Part shown: positions 19,972 to 62,914 of the stretch, one piece after another | Layout: each line of letters begins with the position of its first letter | How positions within the stretch are numbered: the stretch's first letter is position 1 | Assembly: GCF_964204645.1 (NCBI RefSeq) | Contig: NC_134030.1 | Location: 1,099,355-1,163,354 of the forward strand | Length of the DNA: 64,000 nt | Source of the DNA: Tubulanus polymorphus | Taxonomy: Eukaryota; Animalia; Nemertea | Reading direction: 5' to 3' | The notes under the pieces: generated by a model | Told to the model about the DNA's origin: nothing | The model's input: only the letters and a program-made list of their open reading frames with translations | Database searches by the model: none | Translations under genes and position numbers: made by a program

Positions 19972-20042
19972 TATCTAGAAAAACAAGTAAAAATATTAAA
20001 TCATTTGAAAATATATCAGTCAGTCTTATTCTGGTTCAGTGA

Positions 20043-21809: not shown

Positions 21810-22125
21810 TAGCATATTAGGCACATCAAAACAAATCCGGAATTGTCCCCGAACGAAGTGGCTCCCTCCACTCTCCATCAGTATGCCGGGCCACCACCTC
21901 TACCTCTCGGGCCACTCGATCACTCGCCAGCTTTTTGACGAGTGACCGCCCAAGATACGGATGGAGGAGCAGGACCCGCACCATCTCCAGCCCCACCACC
22001 ATCCCTCCTCGGCCGCTTCCTATTTATCCCCTCCCCTTCCTCCCGATTACCTTCGTCAGCCGCACCATCCGCCGGGACCACTCTTGCTCCTCCTCCCTGC
22101 GGAGCCACGACGACTGCAACTGGTA
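21810..22125 (-). pseudogene. Inverted, frameshifted copy of the gene's last exon
   Basis: VAVVVAPQGGGARVVPADGAADEGNREEGEGINRKRPRRDGGG matches 11113-11420. An 8-bp deletion at tcactcgt-tcactcgc shifts the frame. A further 9-bp deletion is specific to copy A. Confidence 0.9.
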
Positions 22126-23042
22126 CTTTTCGGTTTCTCATGGTTTCCCACCATCTTTCAAAAGAGAACTATCGATATATCATTAGCTACAAGGAAACTT
22201 TTCAGAAACTTTTTCAGGTCATTCTTTCTTGTATTATTAGCATTTGATTCTCTATATATCGTCAGAACATGGACTCAGAGTGTTTCTTTAATGGTTAAGA
22301 ATGTCTCTTTAACCAACATCCCCCTAGCCTGCTTCCTAAATATCCCTTCCCTTTCCTCCTGATTACCTTTGATCCCCACTGCCTAGCAGCTAACAGCTGC
22401 TGCTATTTTATCTGGTTTACATGTTTTGCAGATAGTGTCTGTTATGCTATAGTTGTTCTTTTAATCGTTTAACTTCTTCATCTGAAATTTCATTATTCTA
22501 ATTTCAGTTTCACGCAGGAAATGGTTCATGAAAATCTGCATTGAGACTGGGACGAAATGTGCATTGAGACGGATGAAATCTGCATGAACAGAGATATACT
22601 TTAAGATCCCCATTTTATCCATCGGAGTGAATGTACATCCACTACTCACAGGTAGCAAACCTACAAACGCTAAACACTCATCCCTGGGCCCTGATTCAAA
22701 AATAAAAATAAAAGATTAAATTAAGAATTAACATTTTTATGAATCAGTGATCAGTTTCATAAAATAATTCCTAAATTAATTTTAGGGGTTTATTATTTCA
22801 GATTGAAATGAATTCTTCATGTTTATGCAATTCTCATTATCTTTCATTGCAGCATTTATATATTCAATTTTAATCATACATGTGAAATATATAATGTATT
22901 TTCAGGGAAACGTAAACAAGAAAGGAAGGGAAGAAAGAGAAGGGAAGAAAGAGTTGGATGATTAATGCGCACTTATTCTCCATTCCGAATTCCTGTATTC
23001 GACTCTAGGTGATCATCATACGAACGAGATATAGAAAAAAAA

Positions 23043-25819: not shown

Positions 25820-25983
25820 CCACTTTCTTCCGGTCCACTAACTTCCGCGTTTGTGATTTGCATACAAGTAGTTTGAATGTTAAATGTATTAAGCCGCGTG
25901 TTGATTGGTTGAGGTCAGTGCGGTTTACTGAACGATAACCAGCTGTCAGCTGATCGAATCATTCGTTTCACAGACATTACGAC
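25820..25983 (+). promoter_or_regulatory. Putative promoter and non-coding first exon of the 340-aa gene
   Basis: ETS-like CTTCCGG (25827), octamer ATTTGCAT (25856), reverse CCAAT (25903), TCAGT Inr-like (25915), then a strong donor GAC|GTAAGT at 25984 with no upstream ATG. The next good acceptor seen is 29673. Confidence 0.5.
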
Positions 25984-26609: not shown

Positions 26610-28033
26610 ATCGCTGTTTTTGGGTAAGATCGCAGTTTTTAGGTAAGATCGCAGTTTTTAGGTTAGATCGCTGTTTTGAGGTTAGATCACCGTTTTGTGT
26701 TAGATTGCGGTTTTGTGTTAGATCACTTTTTTGTGTTAGATCGCTGTTTTGTGTTAGATCGCTGTTTTAGGTTAGATCGCAGTTTTTAGGTTACATTGCA
26801 GTATTTGGGTTAGACCGCAGTTTTTTGTTAGATCGCAGTTTTTAAGTTAGATCGCTGTTTTGGGTTAGATCACAGTTTTTGTGTTAGATCGCTGTTTTAG
26901 GTTAGATCGCAGTTTTTGTGTTAGATTGCATTTTTGTGTTAGATCACTGGTTTTTTTTTAGATCGCAGTTTTTAGGTTAGATCGCAGTTTTTAGGTTAGA
27001 TCGCTGTTTTGTGTTAGATCGCTGTTTTTAGGTTAGATTGCTGTTTTTAGTTTAGATCGCTGTTTTGTGTTAGATCGCTGTTTTTAGGTTAGATTGCTGT
27101 TTTTGGGTTAGATCGCAGTTTTTGTGTTAGATAGCAGTTTTTAGGTTAGATCGCAGTTTTTGAGTTAAATCGCCTTTTTGGGTTAGATCACAGTCTTTGT
27201 GTTAGATCGCAGCTTTTAGGTTAGATTGCTGTTTTTAGGTTAGATGGCTGTTTTTCTGTTAGATCCCTTTTTTTCTTAGATCGCAGTATTTAGGTTAGAT
27301 CGCTTTTTTTGGATTAGATCGCAGTTTTTGGGTTAGATCGCAGTTATTGTGTTAGATCGCAGTTTTTTGTTAGATCGCTGTTTTTGGGTTAGACGGCAGT
27401 GTTTAGGTTAGATTGCACTTTTTAGGTTAGAACAATGTTTTTCTGTTAGATCGCAGTTTTTTTGTTAGATCGCAGTTTTTAGGTTAGATCGCAATTTTTT
27501 GTGTAAGATCGCAGTTTTTTGTTAGGTCGCTGTTTTTGGGTTAGAAAGCTGTTTTTGTGTTAGATTGGTGTTTTTAGGTTAGATCGCTATTTTTGTGTTA
27601 GATCGCTGTTTTTGGGTTAGATGGCTGTTTTTGGGTTAGATTGGTGTTTTTGGGTTTGATCGCTGTTTTTGGGTTAGATCGCTGTTTTTGGGTTAGATCG
27701 CTGTTTTTAGGTTAGATCGCTGTTTTCGGGTTAGATCGCTGTTTTTGGGTTAGATCGCTGTTTTTAGGTTAGATCGCTGTTTTTAGGTTAGATCGCTGTT
27801 TTTGGGTTAGATCGCTGTTTTTGGGTTAGATCGCTGTTTTTGGGTTAGATCGCTGTTTTTAGGTTAGATCGCTGTTTTTGGGTTAGATTGGTGTTTTTGG
27901 GTTTGATCGCTGTTTTTGGGTTTGATCGCTTTTTTGGGGTTAGATCGCTGTTTTTGGGTTAGATCGCTGTTTTTAGGTTAGATCGCTGTTTTTGGGTTAG
28001 ATCGCTGTTTTTGGGTTAGATCACTGTTTTTGT
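26610..28033. repeat. ~19-20-bp T-rich minisatellite (gttagatcgctgtttttgg); copy B 60890-61930
   Basis: Direct tandem repetition, more homogeneous toward the 3' end in copy A. Confidence 0.96.
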
Positions 28034-28085
28034 GTTTTTGTCAATCATCATATCAAGATTTGCAATCCCAGTTGCCTTCAAGTTT

Positions 28086-29605
28086 CATATAGAGAATTAG
28101 TGGATGTGGTGTCCCTGGACCCCTACATGCACCATATAGAGAATTAGTGGATGTGGTGTCCCTGGACCCCTACATGCACCATATAGAGAATTAGTGGATG
28201 TGGTGTCCCTGGACCCCTACATGCACCATATAGAGAATTAGTGGATGTGGTGTCCCTGGACCCCTACATGCACCATATAGAGAATTAGTGGATGTGGTGT
28301 CCCTGGACCCCTACATGCACCATATAGAGAATTAGTGGATGTGGTGTCCCTGGACCCCTACATGCACCATATAGAGAATTAGTGGATGTGGTGTCCCTGG
28401 ACCCCTACATGCACCATATAGAGAATTAGTGGATGTGGTGTCCCTGGACCCCTACATGCACCATATAGAGAATTAGTGGATGTGGTGTCCCTGGACCCCT
28501 ACATGCATCATATAGAGAATTAGTGGATGTGGTGTCCCTGGACCCCTACATGCACCATATAGAGAATTAGTGGATGTGGTGTCCCTGGACCCCTACATGC
28601 ATCATATAGAGAATTAGTGGATGTGGTGTCCCTGGACCCCTACATGCACCATATAGAGAATTAGTGGATGTGGTGTCCCTGGACCCCTACATGCATCATA
28701 TAGAGAATTAGTGGATGTGGTGTCCCTGGACCCCTACATGCACCATATAGAGAATTAGTGGATGTGGTGTCCCTGGACCCCTACATGCATCATATAGAGA
28801 ATTAGTGGATGTGGTGTCCCTGGACCCCTACATGCACCATATAGAGAATTAGTGGATGTGGTGTCCCTGGACCCCTACATGCACCATATAGAGAATTAGT
28901 GGATCTGGTGTTCCTGGACCCCTACATGCACCATATAGAGAATTAGTGGATGTGGTGTCCCTGGACCCCTACATGCACCATATAGAGAATTAGTGGATCT
29001 GGTGTTCCTGGACCCCTACATGCACCATATAGAGAATTAGTGGATGTGGTCTTCCTGGACCCCTACATGCACCATATAGAGAATTAGTGGATGTGGTGTC
29101 CCTGGACCCCTACATGCACCATATAGAGAATTAGTGGATGTGGTGTCCCTGGACCCTTACATGCACCATATAGAGAATTAGTGGATGTGGTGTCCCTGGA
29201 CCCCTACATGCATCATATAGAGAATTAGTGGATGTGGTGTCCCTGGACCCTTACATGCACCATATAGAGAATTAGTGGATGTGGTGTCCCTGGACCCCTA
29301 CATGCATCATATAGAGAATTAGTGGATGTGGTGTCCCTGGACCCCTACATGCACCATATAGAGAATTAGTGGATGTGGTGTCCCTGGTCCCCTACATGCA
29401 TCATATAGAGAATTAGTGGATGTGGTGTCCCTGGACCCTTACATGCACCATATAGAGAATTAGTGGATGTGGTGTCCCTGGACCCCTACATGCATCATAT
29501 AGAGAATTAGTGGATGTGGTGTCCCTGGACCCCTACATGCACCATATAGAGAATTAGTGGATGTGGTGTCCCTGGACCCCTACATGCACCATATAAAGAA
29601 TTAGT
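28086..29605 (+). repeat. 47-bp satellite, ~32 units, just upstream of the first coding exon
   Basis: Reverse complement of the 20043-21031 unit. Confidence 0.97.
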
Positions 29606-29676
29606 TCACTGAACCAGAATAAGACTGACTGATATATTTTCAAATGATTTAATATTTTTACTTGTTTTTCTAGATA

Positions 29677-32600
29677 ATGCCGAAGGCAAATAAAAAAACT
29701 CGGGGCGTGGGGCCCTCAACATCTAGCCCCTATAATAAAGTAAGTACAAATTTACTGCTTCCATGCTTATTTATTCATCCCATACTTAGTATTTTGTACC
29801 CCTGGGTCCAGTTTCACAAAAAGGATTAACGCCTAAATCGATTTAAGATAAACTGTATTAATGAAGGAATTAAATCGATTTAAGAGTTAAACCTGTTTGT
29901 GAAACTGGGCCCTGAATTGCATCTAGAATGAAAAAAAAGAAAAAAAAATATTGAAAATAACGTTGGTGAAATATTTCTGGATCTCTCTGGATTTCTGCTC
30001 AATGCATCGTTTAGTAAAATATCGATATTCTCTAAAAGTAAAGATATAAGTATAAAAATATTGTATTGAATCGTGATTAGTTACTGTATGCGCTGCTAGT
30101 TGTTGCCCAACCCATAGCCTCATTTCTCTCCATTCTAAATTTGCATTGTTTAACATTGTCTGGTCGCTATGGAAACTATTTATTTAAGTTTCTTTGTGGT
30201 ATCCATGGCAACAGTAACGTTTAGGTAGTGGCACCAATTATGGGTCCCAACGTTCCCATGGCGATACATGAGAACATTTATCCTATTTTTGACCTACATG
30301 ACGTAAGATGGTAGTGAGTCGATGACGTCATTTTCGTCTCACCACTAATGAAAAAAAAAATTAAATGAAAAAAAAAGGAAGAAATGGTTAGAATTACGTT
30401 TATGAAATTTTTCTGGATCGGCTAAATGTATTGTTCCATTAAATATCGACATTCTCTAAAATTATAGGCATCAATATCAAAATGATGATACAGCAGACTC
30501 CGCTTAACTCTGTTCTATTTGGACCATTAATTAACCGAATACCAACTTTTTAAAATTTTAGGATTTTTACGTTAAGGATCAGAAAATGTGTATGCAATTT
30601 CAACCGGGTACCGAGTAGGGTGGCCGAGTCTACTGTAGTCTGCTGCCCCCTCGAATCCATTACCTTATTATCTCTCAATTTGCATTGTTTGACCTCGTCT
30701 GGTTGCTATGGAAACTATTTAGTTATATCAGGAACGGTTTTTTCGAGGTAACCAGTGGCAACAGTTAACAGACGTGTCCGTCCTAGAGATAAACTGTCTG
30801 ATTTCACAGCCACATCCGTCCTAGAGATAAACTGTTAGATAAACTCTGATTTCGCGTCTGTCCTATTTCTTGTCATTGTATGAATATGTTTTCTCTTTTA
30901 TAGGGTACAGCGCAGCAACAACAACAACAACAACAACAACAGCAACAGCAACAACAACAACAAAAATTTAATATTTCTATGTCCGGAATAGACGTAAGTT
31001 ATCGTAAACGCCTGTTTGAAGTCATCATTCTTGAGCTTGAAACCGAAATTTATATTATAGAATATTAAACCCTGCTTCTGCTACTGACAGGTAATGTCCG
31101 TCATACATTACTGCATCGTCAAATCTATACCAGGGTGCACCCAGGCAGATCGTTCGCATCATCACATGCAAAGGGCTGATTATTTTGGAACCCAGTTTTT
31201 ATCAGCTGGAACATTCTGCACATTCGACCATATTGATTGATAGCCCGTTATAGACGAGTGGAGAAAAACTGAAAAACCAGTTCGGAAAAACTTCGATTGA
31301 TTTCACTCACATTTACAGAAATTTGGTCCGACCCCAAAACCATTTACTTACACTATACAAATCAGATCAGGTTTTTAACATTGTCTTTGATTGTATTTTC
31401 AGTTTTTGCCGACAACGCCGCCCAGTGGTGTTTCGACGCCGGTAAGTGATAACTATTTTCTAATAAATCACGCTTATTTCAATTTGTAATTTGAAAATAG
31501 AGGGTAGTAGCTGTTATGTATAAATTATGCTAATTAGGAATAAATTCATATTCGATTAAGTCTCATCATCGTAGAAGTCATATATTAATGATGCTATCTC
31601 TAAAGTTGTCATTTAAATTAAGTGTTATATTTACTACTTCATTTGCTTCATGACCCAAAAACCTCTACTATATAACTACTGGTTTTGTTCTAATCTTGGA
31701 GAATTTGCTGCAAAATTTACTTATCATTTGTTAAACAGTTTTTATTGAAAACCTGAATCAGTGATACATGCATTCATGAATATCCATCTAATATTTTGTT
31801 TTATTTTATCTTTACAGGATTTATCACCGATACAGCACGTGGACGTAAGAGATTAAACATTGATCTTGAATTTTAAGTTCAAACTAATTTATTTTTTATC
31901 TCACTCGGGACTATAGTTATTGCGTTCACTTTGCGTCCAGTTGTCTCGGGTAGTTTTTGATTTATCGTGTTGATAATTGGTTTATATACTCAAACTCAAA
32001 ATATCGGCGCAATTGGAATTAAGATGGCGCACTTGTATGTCCATTTTTTTCCCCGGCAAAATTAGCACTTTAGCAGATTTTAAGGATCAATTCTGTTGTT
32101 ATATTACATTGAAATCAGAGTTTAATATATATCGGTATAGAGCAGATTTTTGCTCTAGTTATAAATAAAGTTATAAATAATCTCATGACATGTTCTGTAT
32201 ATGTGTAGTGAGTTTCGATGTCTTTGGTTCCTTTTAAACCAGGGGGAGTTAAATTTGAAAATGTCAGATCGTCGAGCATTTCAGACCGCTTCCAAAGTGG
32301 GTCCCTGCACCCCTAGTTATACCGTTAATATTTTAATAAAACATTAATATTTTTATTTGATAGAATATATTGATATACCATACATTGATATCGGTCTTGT
32401 AATTGGATCAACAACCATGAGATCAAAACACAGCAAATATGAACCTGCTGTGAATCAATAGATTTGTGATAAATGTAATGAAATTGTTATTTTTCATATT
32501 GACTTTTTGAGTTAAGGGTCTGTTGTATAAGAGTATTTGGTCTCGCGTGTCAATGTATGATATCAATCTGTTGTATTTCCTCGTTCCAATGTTTAAAAGG

Positions 32601-35600
32601 TGTTCGTCACCTTATATTAATAAACTACTTTAACCGTTAGATGGCGCCATAAGTGTGATATTTGATTTATGGGATACCCGCAAAACCAGCTATTCCACCA
32701 GATGGCGCAACGAGTAGTAGGTCGTTCGTTGTCAAAATTAGTTCATTTTCGATAAACTTTGAGATGGTTTGAAGAAGAAATACTTTCATTCTTCTACTCT
32801 GATATCGATTTAGTTTTCATTAATAATTGATTCATTTAAGAGAACAATTCATTCAGATTTAATTGAAATGTACAAGAAAATCGAACGCAGACGACCAACT
32901 ATTTACTAGCGACACCTGGGGAATCCTCGCCTGCCATAAGTGGAATCCTCGATTGCCACAGTAAGACTGCGGGTATCCCATTGTTTGGCGTGTGAAGTAA
33001 AGTAAAGTTAGAAAACGGATGTTTAACTTTGTTGTGAAACGAAAGCGTTTTGGAGATTTTTAAACCAATCAAATCAATATTTTGATATTACGCTTGAAAC
33101 CCTTCCCACTCATATTCTACGTACTAAGTATATATTCTTGTTTCCGTGGAAATCATGGTGAGTGGCGCCATCTATACAGTGGAGTTAGCTTTAAAAATCG
33201 AGCATGCTTCGACAAGTGGCTCCATCTATTCCCTAATACTGAAGCGAGGTAACCAGCAGCGCCCTTATATACAGGAAATGAACGCCTATCAAGTTTAACA
33301 ATGCACGGTGTATTGACCACAGCGACCGGTGATAATTATATCAATGTTGATTAGCTATTGCCATAGACAGGTCCGTAGCGTTTGACTGGACCAGAACGGG
33401 GCCCCCTAACCAAAACAAATTTTGAAAACGTGCCCAGATAAATTGCCTCTGGGAGATTGATTTAACGAGGTTTTGATTAAATGAACAAATTTTAATATTT
33501 GTAAGTTTAACATTTCTGTTTTTAATTTTTCTTTGTAAGGAACTGAATTTTCGAACCCCCCTTAACCACTTCAAGCTACGTTCCTGATATAGTGCTAGCT
33601 ATACCTGAATACTTTTCTCTTATTGAAATTGTCTAAAAAACCAGCACCTTGAACTAATGAACGTCATAATGAAAATGTTTAAAAATTCAACCGTTAATGA
33701 ATTTGACTAATATATTTTTTTTATTTTCATTTCTAGCGTCAGTTTGCCTCACAGGCAAGGTCGCCGTCGCTTAATGTAAGTATCAGTGACGCCCTCAATC
33801 TCACATGCCTCACTTCCCTCCTAATGTAACCATTTTTATGAAATTCCTCAAGAAAATATATACTAGTAATCTTAGAATACACGTTTTTGTACCCAGACCC
33901 CTTCATTCTACTGAACTACCGTGTAATAAGTGCCTGTTGTGTTCATTTTCTGTTGCATTGATTTATATATTATTTCTATTTACAGTTGTCAAACAACAGC
34001 AGCAGCAGCAGCAGCAGCGCACCCCTCCCGCCGGAGACGCCTCCCGACTTGCAAGCAAGAAGTAAGTTCAGTCTTCAAATACAATTTCAATGCATTCAAT
34101 TTTGTGTATGGCATTAAAACGGTTAAAGTTGTGACTAGTTTTCATAACTCCGTGACGTCATATTTCCATCGAGTACCGGACCCTTTCCTATGTTTTTTGC
34201 CAATTTGGATTGAATGATCGCCAGCGGTTTTTCTATACGACCCGGCTCTGCTGTATTGCATTTAGCCATCCTTTTTCTTGGCGTTTTTTATAAGAAGGTG
34301 TTTGATTTTGTCTCTAAGGGATTTAGGAATTTAAGAGACACTTGTACTCTCTATACAGTGAGTTTGTTCTGTTTTTGTTCCCTCGTGAATTTTATTTTGT
34401 TTGAATCAAATCAAATCAGTGCATCTTTCTTGAATTGCGTGTATGTTATAATATTATGTAAGTTATAACGTTAAAATTTCTGTTATATTTAAACCGAATA
34501 TTTAATTGTTGTATTTTGAATGCGATAATGCCGCTCCCTGCTAAAGTCCAGCGTCGTCATCGTGAGGGATGCGGTCATCTGTTCGGGCCCTGATTACGTT
34601 CTGTGTTCATCCTGTTGGGCTACATCGGGCGTTATATGAGTTCATCCTTCCTGGACTTGCGGATTGTGGTCGGAAGATCTATGGGTTCGGGCCGATAAGT
34701 CCCGGAAACAGAAAGTACAGTTTCTGCCGATGTGCCCATTGATGTCTCTATTTCAGAACATCACAGCGGTCGCCGGCTGTACAAGCACGGTCGGCTTCCC
34801 AACTCCATTCTCTGAGGAGGATCGCTGGTTCTCTAGTAACGGTCAGTCACCAGTCAATCAACGGTTCAGCTGGTTCAGTTTCCCAGGTATCGGCGCGCGA
34901 CAGTCGGGATACCTGCACAGGAACTCAGGTCCGGTCCGGGCTACTCCGAGCACCGGTCCGGTCCAGGCATCACCGGATACTGAACATCCTGTCCAGTAGC
35001 TTCGAGAACTGGTCCGGTCCAGGCATCACAGGGTACTGAACATCTGGTCTGGTCAGCTTCGAGAACCGGTCCAGGCATCACCGGATACTGAACATCTGGT
35101 CCGGTCAGCTTCGAGAACTGGTCCGGTCCAGGCATCACCGGGTAATAAACATCCGGTCCGGTCCGGGTGGCTTCGAGCACCGGTCCGGTCCAGGCATCAC
35201 CGGGTACTGAACATCCAGTCTGGTCCGGTCCAGGCATCACCGGGTACTGAACATCCAGTCTGGTCCGGTCCAGGCATCACCGGGTACTGAACATCCAGTC
35301 CGGTCCGGTCCAGGCATCACCGGATACTGAACATCCGGTCCGGTAGCTTCGACAACTGGTCCGGTCCAGGCATCACCGGGTACTGAACATCCAGTCCGGT
35401 CCGGTCCAGGCATCACCGGGTACTGAACATCCAGTCTGGTCCGGTCCAGGCATCAGTGGATACTGAACATCTGGTCCGGTAGCTTCGAGAACTGGTCCGG
35501 TCCAGGCATCACTGGGTACTGAACATCCAGTCCGGTCCGGTCCAGGCATCACTGGGTACTGAACATCCAGTCCGGTCCAGGCATCACCGGGTACTGAACA

Positions 35601-38600
35601 TCCAGTCTGGTCCGGTCCAGGCATCAGTGGATACTGAACATCCTGTCCGGTCAGCTCCGTGCACCGGTCCGGTCCAGGCATCACTGGGTACTGAACATCC
35701 ACTCTGGTCCGGTCCAGGCATCACCGGGTACTGAACAGGGTTCGTCGCGGTGCTTGAAAAACTTGAAATGGCTTGAATTTGAAAAATACTACTCAAGCGC
35801 TTGAAAACAGCTTGAAAATAGATCGAAAGCTTGAAATAATTATTTTTGACTTGAAATAAAAAGATATGGCTTGAAATGCTTGATTATCACAAATTTTCTT
35901 CTTCGCGAATTTTTTTCGATGAAATCGCTGACAGAATATGTTCTTGAGTTGTTTCTACGCTTGCGTCATGTTTTAGGCATCAATAAAGAAATTAATTGAA
36001 TTGTATATAATCGCTATGAGGCTCTTGTGGTGAAACTCTACGGTGTCTGGAGACATGAACATACGGGGAAATTTCAGTCATGCATGTTATCGAGCATTGA
36101 TGTAAAATGGCATTGAAATCCCACACCAGGAGTGAGAGCCATGTTGAAGGCACCGCGACCTAGTCAAAGTCATTGAACATTACAAATTTCGTATTAGGCC
36201 ATACAAAAATCAAGGTCTGTTTGCCGTCATCCGACCGACCCGACTTCAAAGGTACCCAGTGGAAACTTTTTTCTTGGATTCATTGAAATAAATTGTATTT
36301 TTGATACAAATGGCCGACCCACTGCCGATGTATGAGCTATGTATGTTTGAAGTTAAGTGTGCATCATGTGAAAACATGCCTCGACTATTTAGTTGAAGTT
36401 TTCCAGGAAACTGGCAGTGTTCCAATAAGCTGCCATTCATTCTAAAGCTGGTAATGTTATAGCGTGCATATATTCAATCTACTGTTTCATTTTGAACGCA
36501 GATTTCGGATGTTGTTTCCGCTAAAAGTGGTGATGATAAATTTGTTGTTTTTTTTGCCCCAAAATTTTGCAAAAAAAAAATGATGCTACCTTCCTACTGA
36601 CTTATCCCAAAAATAGTAGGTGTAACGGCAAAACAGACAATTAATTTGGGATGGCCAAATATCCAAATCTTGATTGATATGAATATTTAAGCTAGGAAAT
36701 GCTGAAAATCATTGTGATGAACAGGTTTCATCTCTAACAGAATCGTATCAACTCGGAGGTTCCACTGGAATCAAAATTTTACCTCTTTTTTAACATTTTT
36801 ATACGAACCTGTTCAAAATAGGCAAATTGGCTGCGACTAACGAAAATTGCTTCCAACGTGCCTTAAAAATAGCTTGAAAATGGTATAAATCTAGCTTGAA
36901 ATGGCTTGAATTTCACCTGAGCTTGAGACAATGAACCCTGCTGAACATCTGGTCCGGTCAGCTTCCAGCACCGGTCCGGTCCAGGCATCACCGGTTACTG
37001 AACATCCGGTCCGGTCAGCTTCCAGCACCGGTCCGGTCCAGGCATCACCGGTTACTGGTCCGGTCCGGGCAGCTTTGAGCACCGGTCCGGTCCAGGCATC
37101 ACTGAGTACTGAACATCCAGTCCGGTCCGGTCAGCTCCGAGCACCGGTCCAGGCATCACCAGGTACTGAACATCTGGTCTGGTCCGGGCGGCCTGGCATC
37201 AATGTTTCGAATTTAAAACATAGTTATCATGGTTCTAGGTTTGGTAGAGGGCGCTCTTCTACCAGATGCAGGAGCGAGGTCACCTTCACGGAGATCGAGA
37301 TCGAGGGATTATGATTGATTCTGTAGGAACCATCATCATTCATCAGTTCAGGTCGAGGGACCGTTTAGGAAGTTCACGTCTTTCACGTCGAGGGACCGTT
37401 TAGGAAGTTCACGTCTTTCACGTCGAGGGACCGTTTAGGAAGTTCACGTCTTTCACGTCGAGGGACCGTTTAGGAAGTTCACGTCTTTCACGTCGACGGA
37501 CCGTTTAGGAAGTTCACGTCTTTCATGTCGAGGGACCGTTAAGGAAGTCGTCACAATAATCAGGATTTCCGCGATTTCGAAAGTCAGATTTTAAACTTGT
37601 TATTGTCATTGTAAGCTACCGCAGTTACAGGTAAGCCTATTCTTGATTGCCCGAGACAGGCGTGCAGATATTGTTCCCGACTTAAGTTTTTGGTTGATTC
37701 TCTTGTGACTTGTTTGTTTTAGGGGTGAGATGGATGAGCCTTATTGTTTTTTGACATATATAGGTCATCCAAGATGGCCGCCACAGCCATTACAATGTGT
37801 AAAATAGCCATTTTGAAGCTTGTGACAACTCTACAATCTACAGTTTCAAACCAATTTGCCAATTACTTATTCTGTGGTTTCATAATGGTAGGAGAATGAG
37901 CCTTATTGTTTTTGACATATATAGGTCATCCAAGATGGCCGCCACAGCCATTTCAATGTGTGAAATAGCCATTTTGAAGCTTGTGACAACTCTACAATCT
38001 ACAGTTTCAGACCAATTTACCAATTACTTATTCTGTGGTTTCATAATGGTAAGAGGATGAGCCTTATTGTTTTTGACATATATAGGTCATCCAAGATGGC
38101 CGCCACAGCCATTTCAATGTGTGAAATAGCCATTTTGAAGCTTGTTACCGCTCTACGGACTTAAGTTTTAAGCTTAAGACTTAAGATGGCCACCACAGTT
38201 ATATCAATGTGTTAAATCTTATCCGATTTGGAGCTTGTTACTGCTCTAAGATGTAGAGGTTTAGAGGTTTATAATTTCATTCATACTTGTACTGTGGTTT
38301 ATTTATGGTGGTCAGAGGATGAGACCTATTACAATTTGCATTCTCTACTTGACTCACTGGTCAAGGGTTAATATCTAGTTTGATAAATGTGATAAGCATG
38401 TCGGTGAATCACCCCCCCCCCCCCCCGGACTCTGATCTCAATGTCTGATGTCAATCGTCAGCAGTTTCAATGGAATGGGCTCGATTAGGTGTGGAACAAG
38501 TGGAATCCTCGATTGCCACAGTCGAACCTAGAGTATTAAGAGCTCAATTAGGTTCTTCTTTGCGTCTCTTCTCCAGTTGGAGTGCTCCAGTTTCCACCGA

Positions 38601-41600
38601 ATGGAGGAAGATTCGAGATGTGCAGATTCAAGTCCACCATGCGGACTCCGGCTCCGGCTCCGGCAGCTCAAGGTTCAGCCCGAACTCACACAATGCCATC
38701 TCAAGCATCCGTACTTTCTCAAGCGGCTACTAATGCTGTTTGGAGAACAAGTGCACAGCTCCAACATTCTCGTGCCCCTTCTGGTCAGAATAATTCTAGT
38801 TCATATCGGGGAATGCTCCTAAAAGGAGCTCTTCCTCTCGGAGAAACTCAAAATGAATGCTCGGGGCCAGTGAGAGGTTGTCTATAACGAGCAGCCACCT
38901 ACTGATCCGGCGTTCCCGGGTCGTATCACGGCGGCTACTGTCTTCAATTCTGAACACCTCCCGACATGCGCCCGAAAGCAGGTCACGAGACACTAATCTC
39001 GTTAGCTCTCAAAGATCTGGCCAAAAAGAGAGCAATAGAACCAGTACGGGACGAAGCCACATCCGGCTGGTTTTCATGAATATTTATGCTCCTGAAGACC
39101 ACAGGGCGTCGATGGACTGTCATTCCTCGAGTGGCACCTGGATATCCCGAGGCTTCCGATGACTAAAACAGGGAGGTAATTCAAGGTCTCCGTCGAGGTT
39201 AATGGGCGGCTTCATTGGACCTGAAAGATGTCAGGTTCCTATTCACCCGAAATCTCATCAATTGCACAGAATGAAGTGGAAACGCTGCCAGTTCCAGTTC
39301 AGGTCTCTTCCAGTCGGCCTCAGTACAGCCCACGCCCTGGGTATTTACCAGCTTGGGTCAAGTCCAGAAGGTACACTACACTCCAGGGCTGGGTTTCATA
39401 GATATGGAAGAAAAATAATTCCAGGGAACATTTTGAAATTTGTCAGTTATAACCATGGTTTCTCATTGTTAGTATGGTGGTTGAGGATTTATCCCTTTGG
39501 ATAACTTTGATACTCAGTCTATGAAACCGGGTCCTGGAGTATTTGTCTGTTGGTTTACCTCGACGACTGGTTACTAGTACCAAACTCGACTATAGAATGT
39601 CAGGAGGCGGTGACCGCTGTCGACCGCTGTCGTAGACTTAGTTCACCAGTTCCGCGTAAACTAAGTAAAATCTCACTTGATGCCGTCCCAACAGTTCACA
39701 TCTCCGGATCAGCACGGTCTTTCCGTCCATGGCTCGAGTAGCCAAACTTCAAGAAGCGTAGTTACCACAAACGAGAGGACAGCTAGTTATCGGTGACGCC
39801 TGTGGCTAAATGCAATACCGCACTGCCAGGGGTCGTATCTCTGGCTATCTACACATTCAGAGAATATTAACTAAAACCATAGGAAAGGGTCAAGCACTAC
39901 TCCGAAAAAAACTAATTTTATTTCCAAAAAATTATGATATTATATGGATTGCATGCTGTGTGGAAGAAGTTTTCAAAATTATTTAGGAGCTTATTATAAT
40001 TTGAATGCATGAATTGAGAGCAATTTGAAATGTGTTGATATCCGAAAGTGTTTCCATTGACTTCACTCATTCACCTGATGAAGCTTCTATACATTAGTAC
40101 CCAAAGCTTGTGTGTCAAATAAACTAGTTACACGTCCTATAAAGTATTACTTGTCTCGTTATATATTCTAAACCCCAGTTAACAATTCCAGTAAGTCAGG
40201 TTTAGGGAATAGATATTTAAACCTTGAGATGATACCGATGTGATACAATTCCAGTAACTCAGGTTTAGGGAATAGATATTTAAACCTTGAGATGATACCG
40301 ATGTGATACAATTCCAGTAAGTCAGGTTTAGGGAATAGATATTTAAACCTTGAGATGAAACCGATGTGATACAATCCCAGTAAGTCAGGTTTAGGGAATA
40401 GATATTTAAACCTTGAGATGATACCGATGTTATACAATTCCAGTAAGTCAGGTTTAGGGAATAGATATTTAAACCTTGAGATGAAACCGATGTGATACAA
40501 TTCCAGTAAGTCAGGTTTAGGGAATAGATATTTAAACCTTCAGATGATACCGATGTGATACAATTCCAGTAAGTCAGGTTTAGGGAATAGATATTTAAAC
40601 CTTCAGATGATACCGATGTAATACAATTCCAGTAAGTCAGGTTTAGGGAATAGATATTTAAACCTTGAGATGATACCGATGTTATACAATTCCAGTAAGT
40701 CAGGTTTAGGGAATAGATATTTAAACCTTGAGATTAAACCGATGTAATACAATTCCAGTAAGTCAGGTTTAGGGAATAGATATTTAAACCTTGAGATGAA
40801 ACCGATGTGATACAATCCCAGTAAGTCAGGTTTAGGGAATAGATATTTAAACCTTGAGATGAAACCGATGTGATACAATTCCAGTAAGTCAGGTTTAGGG
40901 AATAGATATTTAAACCTTCAGATGATACCGATGTGATACAATTCCAGTAAGTCAGGTTTAGGGAATAGATATTTAAACCTTCAGATGATACCGATGTGAT
41001 ACAATTCCAGTTAGTCAGGTTTAGGGAATAGATATTTAAACCTTCAGATGAAACCGATGTGATACAATTCCAGTAAGTCAGGTTTAGGGAATAGATATTT
41101 AAACCTTCAGATGAAACCGATGTAATACAATTCCAGTAAGTCAGGTTTAGGGAATAGATATTTAAACCTTGAGATGAAACCGATGTGATACAATTCCAGT
41201 AAGTCAGGTTTAGGGAATAGATATTTAAACCTTCAGATGATACCGATGTAATACAATTCCGGTAAGTCAGGTTTGATATTTAAACCTTGAGATGATACCG
41301 ATGAATTTAGCAATTTTGAATGAATTAAACCAATATGAGATTTCGATCCTAAGAATATTGGAAGCTTGTGTTTAACGTTACTAAATATTAATATTATATA
41401 AAGCTAGAAGGACACGAGCGTATCCATTTTTCGCCCGATCGCGACGATTAAATTCGCCGGTGAATTTATACGCCCGATACGAGCGGGTACCGATCTATCT
41501 ATAAATCGGCCGTCACGGTGATTTCGTCGCCCGCCGACATTAAACATGTTCGATATTTACGCCGGTGTTCGGGTCACTTGTTAATTCGCTCGGCTTGTCG

Positions 41601-44600
41601 GCAAGCTTAAAAAGATTTAGAAAAAACTAGAAATTCTCATTCCTGAATGAACTGGATTCATCTGGGTTCAGTTTCATGAGACACAGTTCAAACTGCTCTT
41701 GAATTTGAGTTTGTAATTAATGTATGTGATTATAATGAATTGTATTTTTGTTTTACAGCTTTGGCATTTCGGTTAAGTCGTGCGTTCCGGCGGGAGGAGT
41801 TCGTCAGAATATTTCTACCGGAGTGTAAGTAGTTTAACTATTTTCATACAATATCATTTAGTGTGACGTGTGTTACTGATTCAGGCACGGATCCAGGAAT
41901 GTTTCCAAGACGGGGTTCATAAAAATGCTGACTAAAATCTCTAATAATAGCCGGGGCCTATACGGCATATTTTTTGGCCAAACATAAGGCCTTTTTTTAA
42001 TAGCATGGTTTGGTTGCTCCCAAAATTTGAAGAAACATAAAATAAAAAAGAATTAGAAAAAAAATTTTTTATTCCTGTCTGTGAAACAAATTCAGTGAAA
42101 AACCGAGCAAAAAAGATTTTTCACCTCGGCCGAATGAGAATCCTGGATTGAACGATGAAACAATTGAAAAACGCGAGGTTCTTTTTTGATCGCAGTGTGC
42201 AGAATTCAAACTTTCCAAGAATCATTTGTTCGGACATATGTATATTGCCCTATTGACAGTTCCCTCTTCCTTCTAAAAGTGATTTTATCTCACTGAGGGA
42301 ATTTTTAAAAAATTTTCTCTGAAATGATATGGTAGCGTTTTTTTTTTTGCTTTAAAAATTTTTTGGTAGCCGATCAGCGGGGTCACGACCCCTGAAACCC
42401 TCCCTGGATCCGCGCCTATGATATCTCCTCAAAATCTGATAAAATCTTTCAATGAATTAATGCTGTAATGACGATATGTAGCCATCTGTCTATTTGAATG
42501 CATTTGCAAAAAGACAAAAAGAAATAGTAGCAGAATTTTGGCTAAAAGTTTAGAATACCCAAATTCAACATTGCTTGCAGCAGACGGAATTTCCGCCATT
42601 TTGGTTAACAGGGGATTCCCCCCTCCGGTACTTCCCATGATCAATAGTGTCTATGACGCGTTGCGTACGGAATGCCATGGAATTCCCTCACATGATTTAT
42701 GATAATAATGTTTACTTGCATTCTGATTGGTTAAAATCGCGTGTAGTTTGAACGTAGGCAATGTTTACATTTGTAACGTCACCGGCGAGTCGCTGACATT
42801 AACGTAGTCATTGAGTTAACATTATCTTGCACTGAATGGTGATATCAATCGCATTCATTTTATAAATATTTTGAATATGAATTTGTTTTTATATATCAAC
42901 TGCGAGTAACAGTGTTACGCTATTGAGTCTTAAGAGACAGCCTTTATGGACCTTATTGGTTGTTATAACTCACAAGCTGACTGAGTTAGCATTCTGGATC
43001 CGTCAGATTAGTTACTTCTAGAAAATATGTTAGTCACATTTTCTGACTATATTCTGGAAAACAGTGGAAGCTTGTATCCACCCTAGATTAGAACCAATCA
43101 GAATAGAACCAATCAGAATACACTATTTTACAGAAAATATATTTATGACAATTGCGTAAGGTTTTAGTAAAATAGTGTTTTTTCTCGAGTAGTTGCCGAA
43201 GAAGCATAAAAATTTGATTCAATTTCATTCAGATTTAAACAAACAAATCGAATTTCATTTCATTCAGCGCAAACTTCAAATCTAATTAAAATTTTGTTCA
43301 GTATGAATAAGTTGCAAATCATTGAGAGGAAAAAATAATTAATTGTGTTACTTAAAAAAATCACAATTGTACTGTGTTTATCAAAACAGGAGACCACAGG
43401 ACCTTTGGTCCTCTAGTATTCTTTTCCTAGTTATTCCAAAAACACTAAAACAGTCCAATCAATGATCGCTGCCAGACCAACACGATTACATTGAAATCAA
43501 ACTTAAGTAACATCAGGCGCCCCCTGTTGGAATAATATTCATAGCCGTAGCATCGAAACCATTCGACTTGTTGTTTAATGTATTTCTCTCTATTTTTATT
43601 TTACAGTGATGAACATTTTAGAAGAATGTCCGTTTGGGGACTTGGTGGGGGAATTCAAAAGAAACTTGGTTCCCGATAGGATACCACCACCGGTTAATCC
43701 TATATCGCCCGCTGCTGCCCCTCCCCCACGTCCATTAAATTCGCCTCAGCAGCGGCCTGTCAGACAGCCGCCCCCGGCCGCCACTCGTTCGTCAGACAGA
43801 GTCCGGGGACGGCTGTTTGAAGGAGATCTGACGGAGGTAAGAATCTTTATTTGTATTCATATTTTATTCAGGATATCAGTTGAAGTTCAGCAAATAAATT
43901 ACCAGACCTGTAAACAGAAGAGTAGTCATAAATTTCCATTTGCGGGTAAAACCCCATAGTCGAAAACCTTCGGTTATTGATCTATATCTGCTTAAGACCA
44001 ATGGTTGTACACACGAGTGCGAAAACTTATCGCTCAAACTTTGATTGTATCCATGGTAACACGTACAGTATACTATGCGTGACTTACCGTTTCCTATCAC
44101 TGGAATACAATACTGTTTTTGACCATGAGCGCCATCTGCGGCGGTCATAACGGACTGACTGGTGATTGGCTGAAATGCTCGTCTACCGTGGTGACGATTA
44201 TTCGGTGTTACACGTGCAGCAGACACGTCTCTGAATATCTAACATTTGATTGTTGTAACTCATCGGGAAAAATATGTTTATGAGTCGATTTTTTGTCGAA
44301 ATTTTGTTCGGCAGAAAATTGGCTGCGTACGTCAAGAAGGCGGCTGATATTTGTATCGTGTGACCCCTCGTCCCGGTAATATGCCGACCCACGTACACCT
44401 GAGACCAGTTGCATAGTCAGAGCTTAGAATTAAGACCGTTCTAAGACCAACTTAGTTCTATAGCCAATCTAATAACTTAAGACCAGTCTTTAGATTTAAG
44501 ACCACTTTTGGACTTAAGTCTTGACCATGGAATCGGCCCCAGATGCTTATTCCGCTGTATTGGATGCTGACGTGCTCGTGTCTTCCAGCAATGTTGTTAT

Positions 44601-45363
44601 TCACCAAAAATATCATGTTTTGTTCGAATAACACGATTCATCTGAGTCTGGGTTTAACGGATGACACGTTCAAACAGAACTACGAAATCAATATCAGAAG
44701 TCCTTTTATATTGAAACGGTCCCAGAAGTCCCTGTTATAATGGGTACTTTTTCAAAAAAAGTAACGAGAACTCCGATGGCTTTCCGTATCGGTAAAAACT
44801 AACTATTTCTATGAGCGTCACTCGTAGATTTACCGAAACGCCACCTTGTGACACGATATCCTAACTACGTATAGGTGTTTTATTTGCTGAATCGCTGGTT
44901 TCTCATTCTCATTTTTTATACTTGTGTTTAATTTTATACTAAACAAATTTTTCACTTTTTCTCTTTACAGACACGACCACCGCCAAAAAAAACTAGGACA
45001 AAAAGGAAAAGAAAAGTTGCGGTCGTCGTGGCTCCGCAGGGAGGAGGAGCAAGAGTGGTCCCGGCGGATGGTGCGGCTGAAGAAGGTAATCGGGAGGAAG
45101 GGGAGGGGATAAATAGGAAGCGGCCGAGGAGGGATGGTGGTGGGGCTGGGGATGGTGCGGGTCCTGCTCCTCCTGCTCCTCCATCCGTATCTCGGGCGGT
45201 CACTCGTTCACTCGCCAAAAAGCTGGCGAGTGAACGAGTGGCCCGAGAGGTAGAGGTGGTGGCCCGACATACGGATGGAATGTGGGAGGAGCGGCTTCGT
45301 TCGGGGACAATTCCGGATTTGTTAACTGATTTAAAAAATATTCTTTCAGTGAAGGGATATTAG
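29677..45363 (+). CDS. Spliced gene, 340-aa uncharacterised low-complexity, probably nuclear protein (polyQ, polyS, S/T-P rich, NLS); complete copy
   Basis: join(29677-29739,30904-30993,31403-31441,31818-31844,33737-33775,33986-34061,41759-41824,43607-43836,44971-45363) = 1023 nt. Every exon has a pyrimidine tract+AG acceptor and every internal junction a GTAAG donor. Intron phases 0,0,0,0,0,1,1,0 give no stop: MPKANKKTRGVGPSTSSPYNK/GTAQ17KFNISMSGID/FLPTTPPSGVSTP/DLSPIQHVD/RQFASQARSPSLN/LSNNS7APLPPETPPDLQAR/TLAFRLSRAFRREEFVRIFLPE/LMNILEECPFG..FEGDLTE/TRPPPKKTRTKRKRKV..LSVKGY*. Confidence 0.85.
29802..29914. mobile_element. Short palindromic MITE (copy B 63040-63152)
   Basis: TIRs CTGGGTCCAGTTTCACAAA / TTTGTGAAACTGGGCCCTG. 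Confidence 0.78.
30163..30762. promoter_or_regulatory. Cluster of RFX X-box-like motifs plus CRE
   Basis: GTCGCTATGGAAAC 30163, GTATCCATGGCAAC 30199, GTTCCCATGGCGAT 30252, TGACGTCA 30323, GTTGCTATGGAAAC 30702, GTAACCAGTGGCAAC 30748. Confidence 0.4.
32634..33270. promoter_or_regulatory. Cluster of CTCF-like motifs
   Basis: CCGTTAGATGGCGC (32634) and CCACCAGATGGCGC (32695); reverse-oriented GCGCCATCTA (33165) and GCTCCATCTA (33219). Confidence 0.5.
32671..32979. mobile_element. MITE-like element with perfect 12-bp TIR, carrying a CTCF-like site
   Basis: GGGATACCCGCA ... TGCGGGTATCCC; no clear TSD. Confidence 0.6.
33368..33586. mobile_element. hAT-like MITE remnant
   Basis: CAGGTCCGTAGC ... 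GCTACGTTCCTG termini. Confidence 0.5.
34925..35735. repeat. Same minisatellite, copy B (continues 36941-37200)
   Basis: Same unit, about 500 bp shorter than in copy A. Confidence 0.95.
35736..36940. mobile_element. Non-autonomous DNA transposon with CAGGGTTC termini and 5-bp TSD (hAT5-like)
   Basis: CTGAA|CAGGGTTC...GAACCCTG|CTGAA, inserted in the minisatellite, with subterminal GCTTGAAA repeats at both ends. Confidence 0.8.
40182..41303. repeat. 63-bp satellite, ~18 units (copy B)
   Basis: Same unit and flanks. Confidence 0.97.
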
Positions 45364-48300
45364 GTGCCTTGAACGCATGAGTCGTTCATGCGCGCCTAAT
45401 ATGCCTTCACTGAAAAAAATCAACTATAACATGTACCACATATTTTTTGATTTAATTTTAGTCCAATTCCACAATTATTTCGGCTTACAATAGTGTCTTC
45501 AATTCTTTAAAGCCCAAAGCACCTTTTTGACTCAACATCCAGTATGAAGGTGGCCGGGAATCGGGCCTGTTTTCTTCCATTTTTGTATCCCGCCCAGCAT
45601 ACTGGTTGTTGACTCGAAAAGGTGCTCGCTCTGGGAGCTTATCAAAGGCAGGTGATGGGAAAGGTGCCATCACACACTCTCCTTTGATAAGTTTCCTAGA
45701 GTGTCACGGGCTTTAACGGGTTGAATTCACTATAATACCAATTTTCCAAAATCAATTTAATTTCTTTCAGGCCATTCTTTTTCCATGTTTTTCTGGTACA
45801 TGTTATGGTTGATTTCCATTTTCTAAAATCCGGAATTGAAGCCGTTCGAAGTCGGGGGGATGGTGGTGGGGTTGGGTTAGTTTAGGGTTCCTCTCTGATT
45901 ACCTTCTTTAGCTCATCATCCGTGCAGGTGGCGCTTGCTCTTCTAGCCGGTGTTCCCTGGGGTAAACATTTTAAATTTAAAAAATCAAAAATAAAAAAAA
46001 AATTATAAAATCTTTAAAAATCTCATCTCATTTCATCCAATTTATTTATTTGCGGGTGCGATGCCTATCGCACCCATTCATGTCATCCATCAAAAAAAAA
46101 ATTAAAACTAAAAACGAAAAAAAATATAAAAATTTAAAAAATCTCATCTCATTTCATCCAATTTATTTATTTGCGGGTGCGATCCCTATCGCACCCATTC
46201 ATGTCATTCATCCAAAAAAAAATAAAAAACTAAAAACGAAAAAAAAATGTAAAAATTAAAAAAATCTCATCTCATTTCATCCAATTTATTTATTTGCGGG
46301 TGCGATTCCTATCGCACCCATTCATGTCATTCATCCAAAAAAAAATAAAAAACTAAAAACGAAAAAAAAATATTAAAATTAAAAAATCTCATCTCATTTC
46401 ATCCAATTTATTTATTTGCGGGTGCGATTCCTATCGCACCCATTCATGTCATTCATCAAAAAAAAATTAAAACTAAAAACGAAAAAAAATATAAAAATTT
46501 AAAAAATCTCATCTCATTTCATCCAATTTATTTATTTGCGGGTGCGATTCCTATCGCACCCATTCATGTCATTCATCCAAAAAAAATTTAAAAACTAGAA
46601 ATTAAAGTTCTAAGTTTGTTGTTAGATTCTATTCAAAGAACGTTGTAAAGTTCTTAATTTGTCGTAAAAAACGTTAGAAAAAAAGAACTTCTTAAAGTTC
46701 TCAATCTGCCGTAAAATGCAATTGAAAAGATTATAACTCACATGAAAATTAAAAAGATAAAATAATTGATAAATAATCATTAATAAAAATTGAACTTTGG
46801 TCTCGCAATGTTTCCCCGTTATGCATTTTTTACTCGTCGTCAAACATCGGCAGCTCATCGTCGATACTCGCAGCTCGATACACACCAGCAGCTTGTCGTC
46901 GATACACACCAGCAGCTCGATACACACCAGCAGCTTGTCGTCGATACTCACCAGCAGCTCGATTCACACCAGCAGTTCGTCGTTGATACACACCAGCAGT
47001 TCGTCGTCAATACACACCAGCAGTTCGTCGTCGATACACACCAGCAGTTCGTCATCTATACACACCAGCAGTTTGTCGTCGATACACACCAGCAGTTCGT
47101 CGTCGATACACACCAGCAGTTCGTCGTCGATACACACCAGCAGCTCGATACTCAGCAGCAGTTTGATACACACCAGCAGCTCGTCAATACACACCAGCAG
47201 TTCGTCGTCGATACACACCAGCAGCTCGTCGTCGATACACACCAGCCGCTCGATACTCACAGCTCGATACACACCAGCAGCTCGTCGATACACACCAGCA
47301 GCTCGATACTCACCAGCAGCTCGATACACACCAGCAGCTCGTCGTCGATACACACCAGCAGCTTGATACCAAAACAGCTTTTAGCTGGTGAAAACCTACC
47401 CCCCATCGGGGTTAAACATGATCAAGCTATTATTCTAGGAATATAACTGTTGCAAGGGAAGTTAAGATTCATTAACCTAAACTTGATACAAAGAGATTAT
47501 TGCTAATTATGAATTTCAAGGGTTTAAAAACTGATTTAAAAATCTTGAAAGACGCTCGGTCTCACTAGAGATTTTCATCTTAAAGATTTATTGTCCTCTT
47601 ACTATTGTTTAGGTGATCTATAATTTGGTAAATGCTGCTGTTGGAAAGATGCCAGAAGAAAGTTGATTCGTGCACATCTTCACTTCACGTATTTATTGCA
47701 CAAGGCGCCGACTTGCACCTGCACTACACCATTCACACTTCACCACTTCTGCATCTTTATCAATTAATTCTGGCATCTATTTGAAAATTACTTTAAACAT
47801 CAGATCTCAAACTGAAACATTGAGGTATTGAATTTCAAACTGAAATATCGAGCTATCGAATCTCGATCTCAAATGTTTACTGGAAGCCATATTTGATGTT
47901 GTATTATTCATCATAGATTGTTTAGTGTTTTCTGGCATATGCGGGCCATTTAAGATGGTCAGATAAATTCCCCGGTGGAAAATATATCTCGTGGAAGAGT
48001 CATGGAAATGAAAAATATCTTATGTAGATGTGAAGTTAGGAACCTTGCAACAGTTATTCCACCTGAGGATAATTTGATATAAGATGAATCAGTTATTGGA
48101 TCATTTAACTGAAGCCAAATATAGTGAAAATCTTAGTAAAAATTTGTCTCAAACTACAATTGAAAGGACTTATCACAGTTCTAATTCGACTCTAGGTGCG
48201 TTCAGAAGAACTTCTTAACAGTGAAAAAACTTGACTAAAAATCAGGAATCGACCCTGTTCATTGATAAGATTTGATCTTTATTTGAAGATTAAGAATCAA

Positions 48301-62843: not shown

Positions 62844-62914
62844 TCACTGAACCAGAATAAGACTGACTGATATATTTTCAAATGATTTAATATTTTTACT
62901 TGTTTTTCTAGATA

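Follow-up and report, generated by a model that had tools for sequence, protein, structure and literature searches.

A tandemly amplified nemertean gene whose first eight exons outpace the adjacent introns and whose copies may be escaping gene-silencing RNAs

The window, meaning the whole 64,000-nucleotide stretch of Tubulanus polymorphus DNA analysed here, raises the question of whether a single hidden gene described in an earlier note is real, and of how such a gene has evolved. The nine exons (63, 90, 39, 27, 39, 76, 66, 230 and 393 nt) were recovered at the lengths claimed and with canonical splice sites, the internal acceptors all showing a polypyrimidine tract and YAG, the donors all GTAAG and the introns GT-AG. 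When joined, they give a stop-free CDS of 1023 nt and 340 aa with a single terminal stop, and the phase 1 exit at 34061 matches the phase 1 entry at 41759 across a 7.7-kb intron, as had been proposed. An acceptor/donor scan of positions 29600-45000 that was blind to the model returned 11 candidates on the + strand and 0 on the - strand, the 11 being exons 1-8, two alternative acceptors inside those exons and one candidate in satellite. The GC content of the exons is 0.38-0.62 against 0.28-0.35 in their flanks, and in diverged copies the exons form conserved islands of unchanged order and phase; exon order and intron phases are kept in diverged paralogs even where the introns no longer align. 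Together, the blind scan, the GC contrast and the conserved islands make chance exons unlikely. The coding part of the gene is composed as follows.

26610..29605: 19-bp and 47-bp satellites in the first intron
29674..29739, + strand: coding exon 1, basic N-terminus, hypervariable among copies, ATG at 29677
30904..30993, + strand: exon 2, polyQ (Q17; Q10-Q12 in paralogs), phase 0/0
31403..31441, + strand: exon 3, S/T-P rich, phase 0/0
31818..31844, + strand: exon 4, a 27-nt microexon, phase 0/0
33737..33775, + strand: exon 5, phase 0/0
33986..34061, + strand: exon 6, S7 and a conserved PPETPP motif, phase 0/1
34062..41758, + strand: 7.7-kb intron with 40/56-bp, 35-bp, 161-bp and 63-bp satellites
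41759..41824, + strand: exon 7, 66 nt, of phase 1/1 in all paralogs, encoding the first half of a variable helical domain
43607..43836, + strand: exon 8, phase 1/0, encoding the rest of the variable helical domain, a Pro-rich linker and a conserved R-x-S-x-R-hydrophobic / GRLxEG motif (aa 194-208)
44971..45363, + strand: coding part of exon 9, two NLS-like stretches and a conserved four-helix C-terminal domain

The phase-0 exons, for which combinatorial skipping had been proposed, follow one another in unchanged order in the four complete copies, and two copies carry one more. The long intron, which is about 4.6-4.9 kb and unalignable in diverged copies, contains the satellites that had been reported; the reported transposon content was not confirmed, 9 non-satellite frames of the unit being without a Pfam match. 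Exon 1 truly starts at 29674, and since its acceptor lies 3 nt ahead of the ATG, an upstream non-coding exon is implied. The candidate for it lies in the following region.

25780..25983, + strand: putative promoter and short non-coding first exon
25904-25908: reverse CCAAT within the putative promoter region
25959-25964: Inr-like TCATTC within the putative promoter region
25984: donor GTAAGT of the non-coding first exon, which perhaps starts at about 25961

This putative promoter/first-exon block occurs once per unit on the same strand and is 97-100% identical, and its part 25872-25979 is 86-87% conserved in diverged C8 copies, with the donor at its end in both. An AATAAA search was uninformative and placed no poly(A) site for the gene, and a bacterial promoter scan was likewise uninformative. 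The reading frames are stop-free in all four complete copies compared, and dN/dS between copies is mostly 0.06-0.4, i.e. well below 1 in this comparison of paralogs, as expected of purifying selection. Judged by its sequence, the locus is a spliced, intact protein-coding gene under purifying selection.

The idea of a single gene had to be given up, because the gene belongs to a multigene family and is repeated, unit after unit, in a large tandem array. The array unit is about 34 kb long, with 17 copies on this contig and about 34 genome-wide (family A), mostly in tandem arrays. An assembly artefact was rejected as the source of the array, as its units are 1-5% different from one another and have satellites of unequal length. 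A sister family B of 9 copies, 43-47% identical, keeps phases and order, and has its exons but not its flanks in common with family A. Subfamilies A (34 copies), B (9) and perhaps C can be distinguished. The C3 copies are mosaic, joining a C8-type exon 7 end to a window-type exon 8. A search of the unit for transposase, helicase, integrase and shared element ends found none, although intron-split element genes could escape it. Parts of both neighbouring copies lie in the window.

7866..11461, + strand: previous tandem copy, exons 7-9 (7866-7931, 9705-9934, 11069-11461)
62912..62977, + strand: next tandem copy, exon 1, identical to that of the window gene

The comparison drew on few copies, four complete ones and about 17 for exon 8, and on family B outside its 5' part; the C12 matches and most of the array did not enter it. 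Exons 1-8 outpace the adjacent introns, mostly at synonymous sites and with boundaries at the splice sites, and this is the most unusual property of the gene. Between the window and the C8:15.60M copy, 95 of 627 positions differ in exons 1-8 as against 61 of 1257 in the 70-nt flanks (Fisher p 1.6e-13). In the same pair exon 1 differs at 16/66 positions, including 11 of about 15 synonymous sites, and its flanks at 0/140; the flanks of exon 3 are also identical (0/140). Among four exon-1 variants, 5-11 of about 15 synonymous sites differ as compared with 0-2/70 positions of the upstream intron, and the longest run in common is 8-18 nt. The variants do not fall into a few old types, each of them carrying changes of its own; in exon 1 synonymous changes exceed the others and are found beyond the first amino-acid change as well as being the majority. 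In the most diverged region dN/dS is 0.14-0.23. The 95 exonic changes (56 of them transversions) carry no single-base mutational signature, and CpG decay was not supported as their cause, only 24 being in CpG context; in the one pair tested, the exon excess persists after removal of CpG sites. Recent variants form compact patches, one of them with 5 changes within 9 nt, for which no donor was found among the copies compared. In exon 8 the latest patches mainly alter amino acids (7/9 nt). One patch runs continuously in mRNA coordinates over the exon 7/8 junction, and in C3 copies the part in exon 7 is found apart from the part in exon 8.

The translation contains Q17 (aa 25), S7 (aa 91), the eight S/T-P sites previously counted (aa 17, 56, 63, 67, 82, 104, 167 and 179) and the basic NLS-like stretches, the latter conserved in family A. 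The protein is mostly low-complexity and, as had been proposed, lineage-specific, no homologue or fold match being found outside the genome when the exons were searched singly. The "one hydrophobic island" was mistaken, since hydrophobic helices occur in two places, at aa 113-156 and at aa 290-340, and the island is the most variable folded part rather than a conserved core. The aa 113-156 domain keeps its length and hydrophobic pattern and differs at 39-52% of nonsynonymous sites among the most diverged C8 paralogs, in which the better conserved C-terminal domain (51 aa in four helices, 45208-45360) is almost invariant. Family and fold searches took the exons one at a time rather than the whole protein or the aa 113-156 domain as joined from exons 7 and 8. 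On this basis, Pfam gave nothing above cut-off, 1.84 billion protein representatives gave one spurious FN3-repeat match and no self-match, and structure comparison reached a best Z of 4.0, Foldseek E above 2 and an atlas TM of 0.46. P0001 was rejected as a homologue, being a bacterial-type fibronectin-repeat protein matched over 17 positions only; the weak Pfam rows DUF6508, LisH, PARP and BCL_N are all below cut-off, and RGRLF does not fit the spacing of a cyclin-binding RxL. The spacing of aa 123-153 has some likeness to Dpy-30, a reading without Pfam support when exon 8 alone was searched. The R-x-S-x-R-hydrophobic motif at aa 194 is present in every exon-8 variant and is conserved in families A and B. 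The protein is mostly disordered, probably nuclear and without known relatives.

Each unit of family A also holds inverted, broken pieces of the gene, and a hairpin lies at its stop codon.

21830..22131, - strand: inverted, broken exon 9 fragment (next unit 56166-56476)
19891..20043, - strand: inverted exon 1 fragment with identical upstream intron (next unit near 54230-54380)
45344..45415, + strand: 72-nt, 31-pair hairpin straddling the stop codon

Exon 9, the least diverged exon, matches the inverted pieces of every unit perfectly over 59-68 nt, and no 16-mer of exons 1-8 recurs exactly on the minus strand of the same unit. The hairpin (-45.9 kcal/mol, z -10.7) hardly varies within family A, is missing from family B and has no match in Rfam. 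A pre-miRNA has a stable stem of about 33-35 bp, single-stranded flanks and two precisely processed arms; the hairpin approaches this form with 31 pairs and 2 mismatches, but its loop is short and two-sided covariation was not found.

The divergence of the first eight exons may reflect copies escaping gene-silencing RNAs. We tentatively favour, as a real possibility, an ampliconic chromatin-associated gene of the Dox or Kindr kind that evades small RNAs by recoding its mRNA. The basic stretches would import the protein into the nucleus, the HMGN/Dsup-like R-x-S-x-R motif would hold it on nucleosomes, proline-directed kinases would switch it, and the fixed C-terminal and variable N-terminal helical domains would recruit partners. 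The family would be pitted against the small-RNA silencing of the host, most likely by PIWI/piRNA. Guide RNAs derived from copies that are older or scrambled would pair with the spliced mRNA, so that copies changing many exon letters while keeping the protein would escape and rise in number; the introns, absent from mRNA, would stay homogenised. PIWI slicing, which tolerates single mismatches, requires 15 or more contiguous pairs (PMC10338343), and dense change is therefore what escape would need. Six Piwi-domain loci were found in the genome, and an RdRP search of it was empty and uninformative. The exon excess over the flanks, the compact patches lacking a donor, the low CpG share, the low dN/dS and the absence of a 16-mer shared by exons 1-8 and the minus strand of the unit speak for escape. 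In nemerteans DICER2 and an siRNA signature are reported absent (10.1101/2023.05.08.538551), which counts against escape in leaving piRNA-type guides alone. The more specific form of this reading, a germline-conflict or selfish spiralian family with PIWI-type escape by synonymous recoding of the 5' half, suppressor fragments within the unit, a stop-codon hairpin and a new nucleosome-binding protein, is doubtful. Against escape stands exon 9, which diverges least in spite of its matches, so that either the pieces are ineffective as triggers or exon 9 is exempt. The pieces are, moreover, in sense to a divergent transcript, antisense requiring read-through or opposite-strand transcription, and the amino-acid changes of the newest exon-8 patches also count against it. 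The nucleosome motif is a resemblance of 6 residues, the first arginine of RRSxRL being missing from the window copy. The small number of copies compared also weighs against the reading.

The exons may on the other hand be old and the introns young, which we consider somewhat unlikely: short gene conversion would homogenise introns, promoter and exon 9, and selection would keep N-terminal protein variants as specificity codes, as in toxin-antidote/recognition families, with synonymous differences riding along. The variable aa 113-156 beside an almost invariant C-terminal domain, the mosaic C3 copies and the mainly nonsynonymous exon-8 patches agree with this, but linked retention should spill into the introns and the divergence stops at the splice sites of exons 1 and 3. 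Exon 1, with its predominance of synonymous changes outside the first amino-acid change and its individually changed variants, also speaks against it. In MHC class I and similar families the introns are homogenised and the exons diverged, the excess being driven by amino-acid selection; the introns here are likewise more alike than the exons between copies, whereas the exon excess is largely synonymous, with dN/dS about 0.2. It is quite unlikely that an ordinary host gene was amplified for dosage, or was carried along passively by a large mobile element or a segmental duplication of 34 kb, under raised exonic mutation (e.g. methylation). Satellite-rich arrays do duplicate easily, purifying selection bespeaks a useful protein and the exons are GC-rich; however, exon 9 is equally GC-rich and hardly diverges, the CpG share is low, the unit has no transposase, helicase or integrase match, and families A and B have exons but not flanks in common. 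If exons were rewritten by an RNA-templated or RNA-guided process, either conversion through cDNA of diverged paralog mRNAs or mutagenic repair where RNAs target the DNA, and purifying selection then acted on them, this would account for the exon-sharp limits and the patch crossing the exon 7/8 junction, but no intron loss or processed copy was seen, the patch halves are separate in C3 copies, and neither a donor among the copies compared nor a single-base signature was found, which renders it very doubtful. That the joined model is not expressed as drawn, being chance exons or a silent array, is highly improbable in view of the phase and order conserved to the 43-47% identical sister family, the low dN/dS and the four intact frames, even though the protein is absent from the public protein collections searched.

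The escape reading can be compared with known systems. The features of drivers found here are lineage restriction, amplification among repeats and the presence of degenerate inverted gene copies. Like Drosophila simulans Dox/Dxl with the Nmy/Tmy hairpin suppressors, the family is multicopy and lineage-restricted, encodes a predicted chromatin protein and lies amid satellites with inverted derivatives of itself alongside; unlike it, Dox copies are dispersed, X-linked and protamine-like, and no sequence similarity is apparent (PMC12941216). Drive and siRNAs are proven for Dox and would be predictions here, and exon-restricted synonymous recoding is absent from the review covering Dox (PMC12941216). 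Maize Ab10 Kindr/pseudo-Kindr also combines a tandem amplified cluster with degenerate, truncated and inverted copies, the inverted degenerate ones being proposed to yield silencing RNAs, and both this system and Dox/Nmy are described as working by small RNAs from degenerate copies; Kindr, however, is a kinesin of known family, unlike the orphan here, and pseudo-Kindr is on other chromosomes whereas the fragments here lie inside each unit (PMC12941216). Mouse Slx/Slxl1-Sly and fission yeast wtf share co-amplified subfamilies, mosaic copies, and variable and constant protein parts, but the protein here has no transmembrane segments, and sex linkage, germline expression or poison-antidote isoforms would be hypothetical here (PMC12941216). 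HMGN and tardigrade Dsup are likewise disordered basic proteins with an R-x-S-x-R-hydrophobic motif (RRSARL / RRSSRL, here RSSDRV / RWSRRV), with no other similarity (PMC12487698).

Orphan disordered nuclear proteins are common and alone of modest interest. What is unusual is that synonymous sites are near saturation in small exons while neighbouring intron letters are identical, and this reversed divergence contradicts the usual assumption that synonymous and intron sites follow the same clock. If the small-RNA escape were true, the array would allow a direct test of the old question whether recoding lets genes keep ahead of piRNA silencing, as it would offer dozens of copies that can be dated and would predict guides and their targets explicitly, the approximately 34 copies being readable as a time series. 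The protein would then define a new nucleosome-binding family, and the locus would provide a case from animals in which hardly any conflict over drive or silencing is known.

All nine exons proposed in the earlier note were found with the proposed lengths, and together they form a 1023-nt open frame of 340 aa that carries the predicted Q17 and S7 runs and both basic stretches, along with eight S/T-P sites. Every donor reads GTAAG and every acceptor is pyrimidine-rich with YAG. Moreover, a model-blind acceptor/donor scan of 29600-45000 returned 11 candidates on the plus strand (exons 1-8, two alternative acceptors within these exons and one satellite site) and 0 on the minus strand. The ATG lies 3 nt downstream of the acceptor at 29673/29674 and therefore an earlier exon exists. 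The block 25872-25979 occurs once per gene copy, is kept in diverged copies and runs up to a donor at 25984. Within it are a CCAAT box in reverse orientation and an Inr-like TCATTC; we infer a putative promoter and short non-coding exon in this region. Further features of the window include the following.

29674-29739 (+), coding exon 1
43607-43836 (+), exon 8
44971-45363 (+), coding part of exon 9
26610-28036, 19-bp satellite with a telomere-like core, GGGTTAG, in the first intron
29804-29912, imperfect MITE-like palindrome of ~110 nt in intron 1
21454 region (-) and 55790, a second, far more diverged exon-1-like remnant with a donor, between two inverted fragments

The gene is very probably real and belongs to an amplified orphan family, standing in a tandem array. 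The window spans almost two copies of the ~34-kb repeat unit. Across the 268-Mb genome, intact exon 9 is present in 17 tandem copies on the plus strand of the window's contig, C6 (1.06-1.75 Mb), with one further inverted copy at 0.65 Mb, 10 copies on C3 and 6 on C8, giving ~34 for this family (family A). A sister family, B, with 9 copies distributed over C8, C9 and C11, is 43-47% identical to family A in its best parts. A tandem array on C12 (G000:C12:3299246-3340636, minus strand, period ~11.3 kb) gave eight weak matches to the exon-8 profile (E 3e-4 to 7e-4) and may be a third family. Every unit carries inverted, broken fragments of exon 9 and exon 1; upstream of the C8 copies lie scrambled exon pieces in inverted orientation (L030:3432-7227 and L026:5181-8855, two stretches with paralog copies), some of which join part of exon 8 to part of exon 9. 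A 2.7-kb repeat made of exon-9 pieces was also seen at C8:15.158-15.172 Mb, and exon-8 fragments stand in tandem at L027:4394-6177 (C8:15.07 Mb), each bearing its own version of the helical segment.

The exons of two C8 copies form islands of similarity with order and phases unchanged, together with one additional phase-0 exon, while the long introns are not alignable. Three complete C8 copies have open frames of 343, 344 and 347 aa. The family B gene at L021:586-5953 (minus-strand count; L021 is G000:C11:383000-392999) keeps the exon phases of family A, its series being 0/0, 0/0, 0/1, 1/1 (66 nt, as in family A), 1/0 and 0/stop. dN/dS between paralogs is mostly 0.06-0.4.

Residues 1-112 and 157-289 are poor in hydrophobic residues. 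The proposed hydrophobic island was recovered at aa 113-156, but it is not the only one, as aa 290-340 is also not low in hydrophobics. The helical region at aa 113-156 keeps its length and hydrophobic pattern and is highly variable in sequence among paralogs. The C-terminal region (aa 290-340) hardly varies within family A and shares 47% identity with family B; AlphaFold predicts four helices (best model pLDDT 82, others 58-68, pTM 0.57), and structure searches with this predicted domain gave no match. The most conserved linear motif, R-x-S-x-R-hydrophobic followed by GRLxEG (aa 194-208), resembles the acidic-patch motif of HMGN/Dsup (PMC12487698), which is a lead only. The L021 gene carries RRSPRL, which comes nearer to the HMGN motif, in the exon preceding the phase 0/1 exon. 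Exon-by-exon searches, two of which covered only proteins near the query length, found no homologue outside this genome; the single-exon queries split the aa 113-156 domain. The earlier reading of a lineage-specific disordered nuclear protein is plausible, if incomplete.

A 72-nt stem of 31 pairs spans the stop codon (45344-45415; -45.9 kcal/mol, z -10.7). Its only occurrences are at the ends of family A copies, where it is nearly invariant, showing a single U-A to U-G change and no two-sided covariation; family B lacks it. It is pre-miRNA-like, and an Rfam search with it gave no match. The hairpin could be a substrate for Microprocessor, an element for localisation or decay, or a local inversion that has become fixed.

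Exons 1-8 were found to diverge faster than the flanking introns. When the window copy is compared with the one at 15.60 Mb on C8, 95/627 positions differ in these exons against 61/1257 in the 70-nt flanks (p 1.6e-13); exon 1 differs at 16/66 against 0/140 in its flanks, and exon 9 at 3/393. Introns 1-5 diverge by 2-8% over their full length. Among four exon-1 variants, 5-11 of ~15 synonymous sites differ, with 0-2 differences in the upstream 70 letters. Across the arrays, identity is 91-100% for the exon-1 block, 98-100% for exon 9 and 97-100% for the promoter block. That block is weak as a control for RNA effects, since its exon is perhaps only ~23 nt long. CpG decay was rejected as the cause of the exon changes (24/95 in CpG context, 56 transversions). 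In exon 8 the young variants form tight patches. Exon 9 of family B (L023 versus L021, two paralog stretches) points weakly in the same direction, with 13/465 differences against 0/136 in the flanks.

The reading we favour, though tentatively, is that the exons were recoded to escape small-RNA silencing. Selection acting on the mRNA sequence would jointly explain the splice-site limits, the synonymous excess and the low dN/dS. PIWI slicing requires a contiguous run of at least 15 pairs and still proceeds when mismatches are scattered (PMC10338343), therefore escape would require dense change; such change is seen in the exon 1 variants, whose longest shared runs are 8-18 nt. DICER2 and an siRNA signature are reported absent in nemerteans (10.1101/2023.05.08.538551), hence only guides of piRNA type would be available. 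Six Piwi-domain loci are present in the genome (C1:4.26, C2:0.40, C2:20.26, C4:24.72, C8:8.21 and C8:14.11 Mb), and an RdRP search of it, run without a working control, gave no match. One result speaks against the simple form of this reading: exon 9 still matches the inverted pieces within the same unit perfectly over 59 and 68 nt and shows hardly any change, so these pieces cannot count as a proven trigger.

Protein-level selection combined with gene conversion is the nearest rival, less probable than escape. Passive or dosage amplification is improbable, and RNA-templated rewriting slightly more so. That there is no real gene is very unlikely.

As for the favoured small-RNA escape, Dox and Kindr are typical cases of lineage-specific genes that have been amplified and are accompanied by degenerate copies in inverted orientation (PMC12941216), a pattern also seen in the family A gene. 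This gene is not classifiable as a driver; its closest counterpart is an ampliconic conflict gene exposed to small-RNA pressure.
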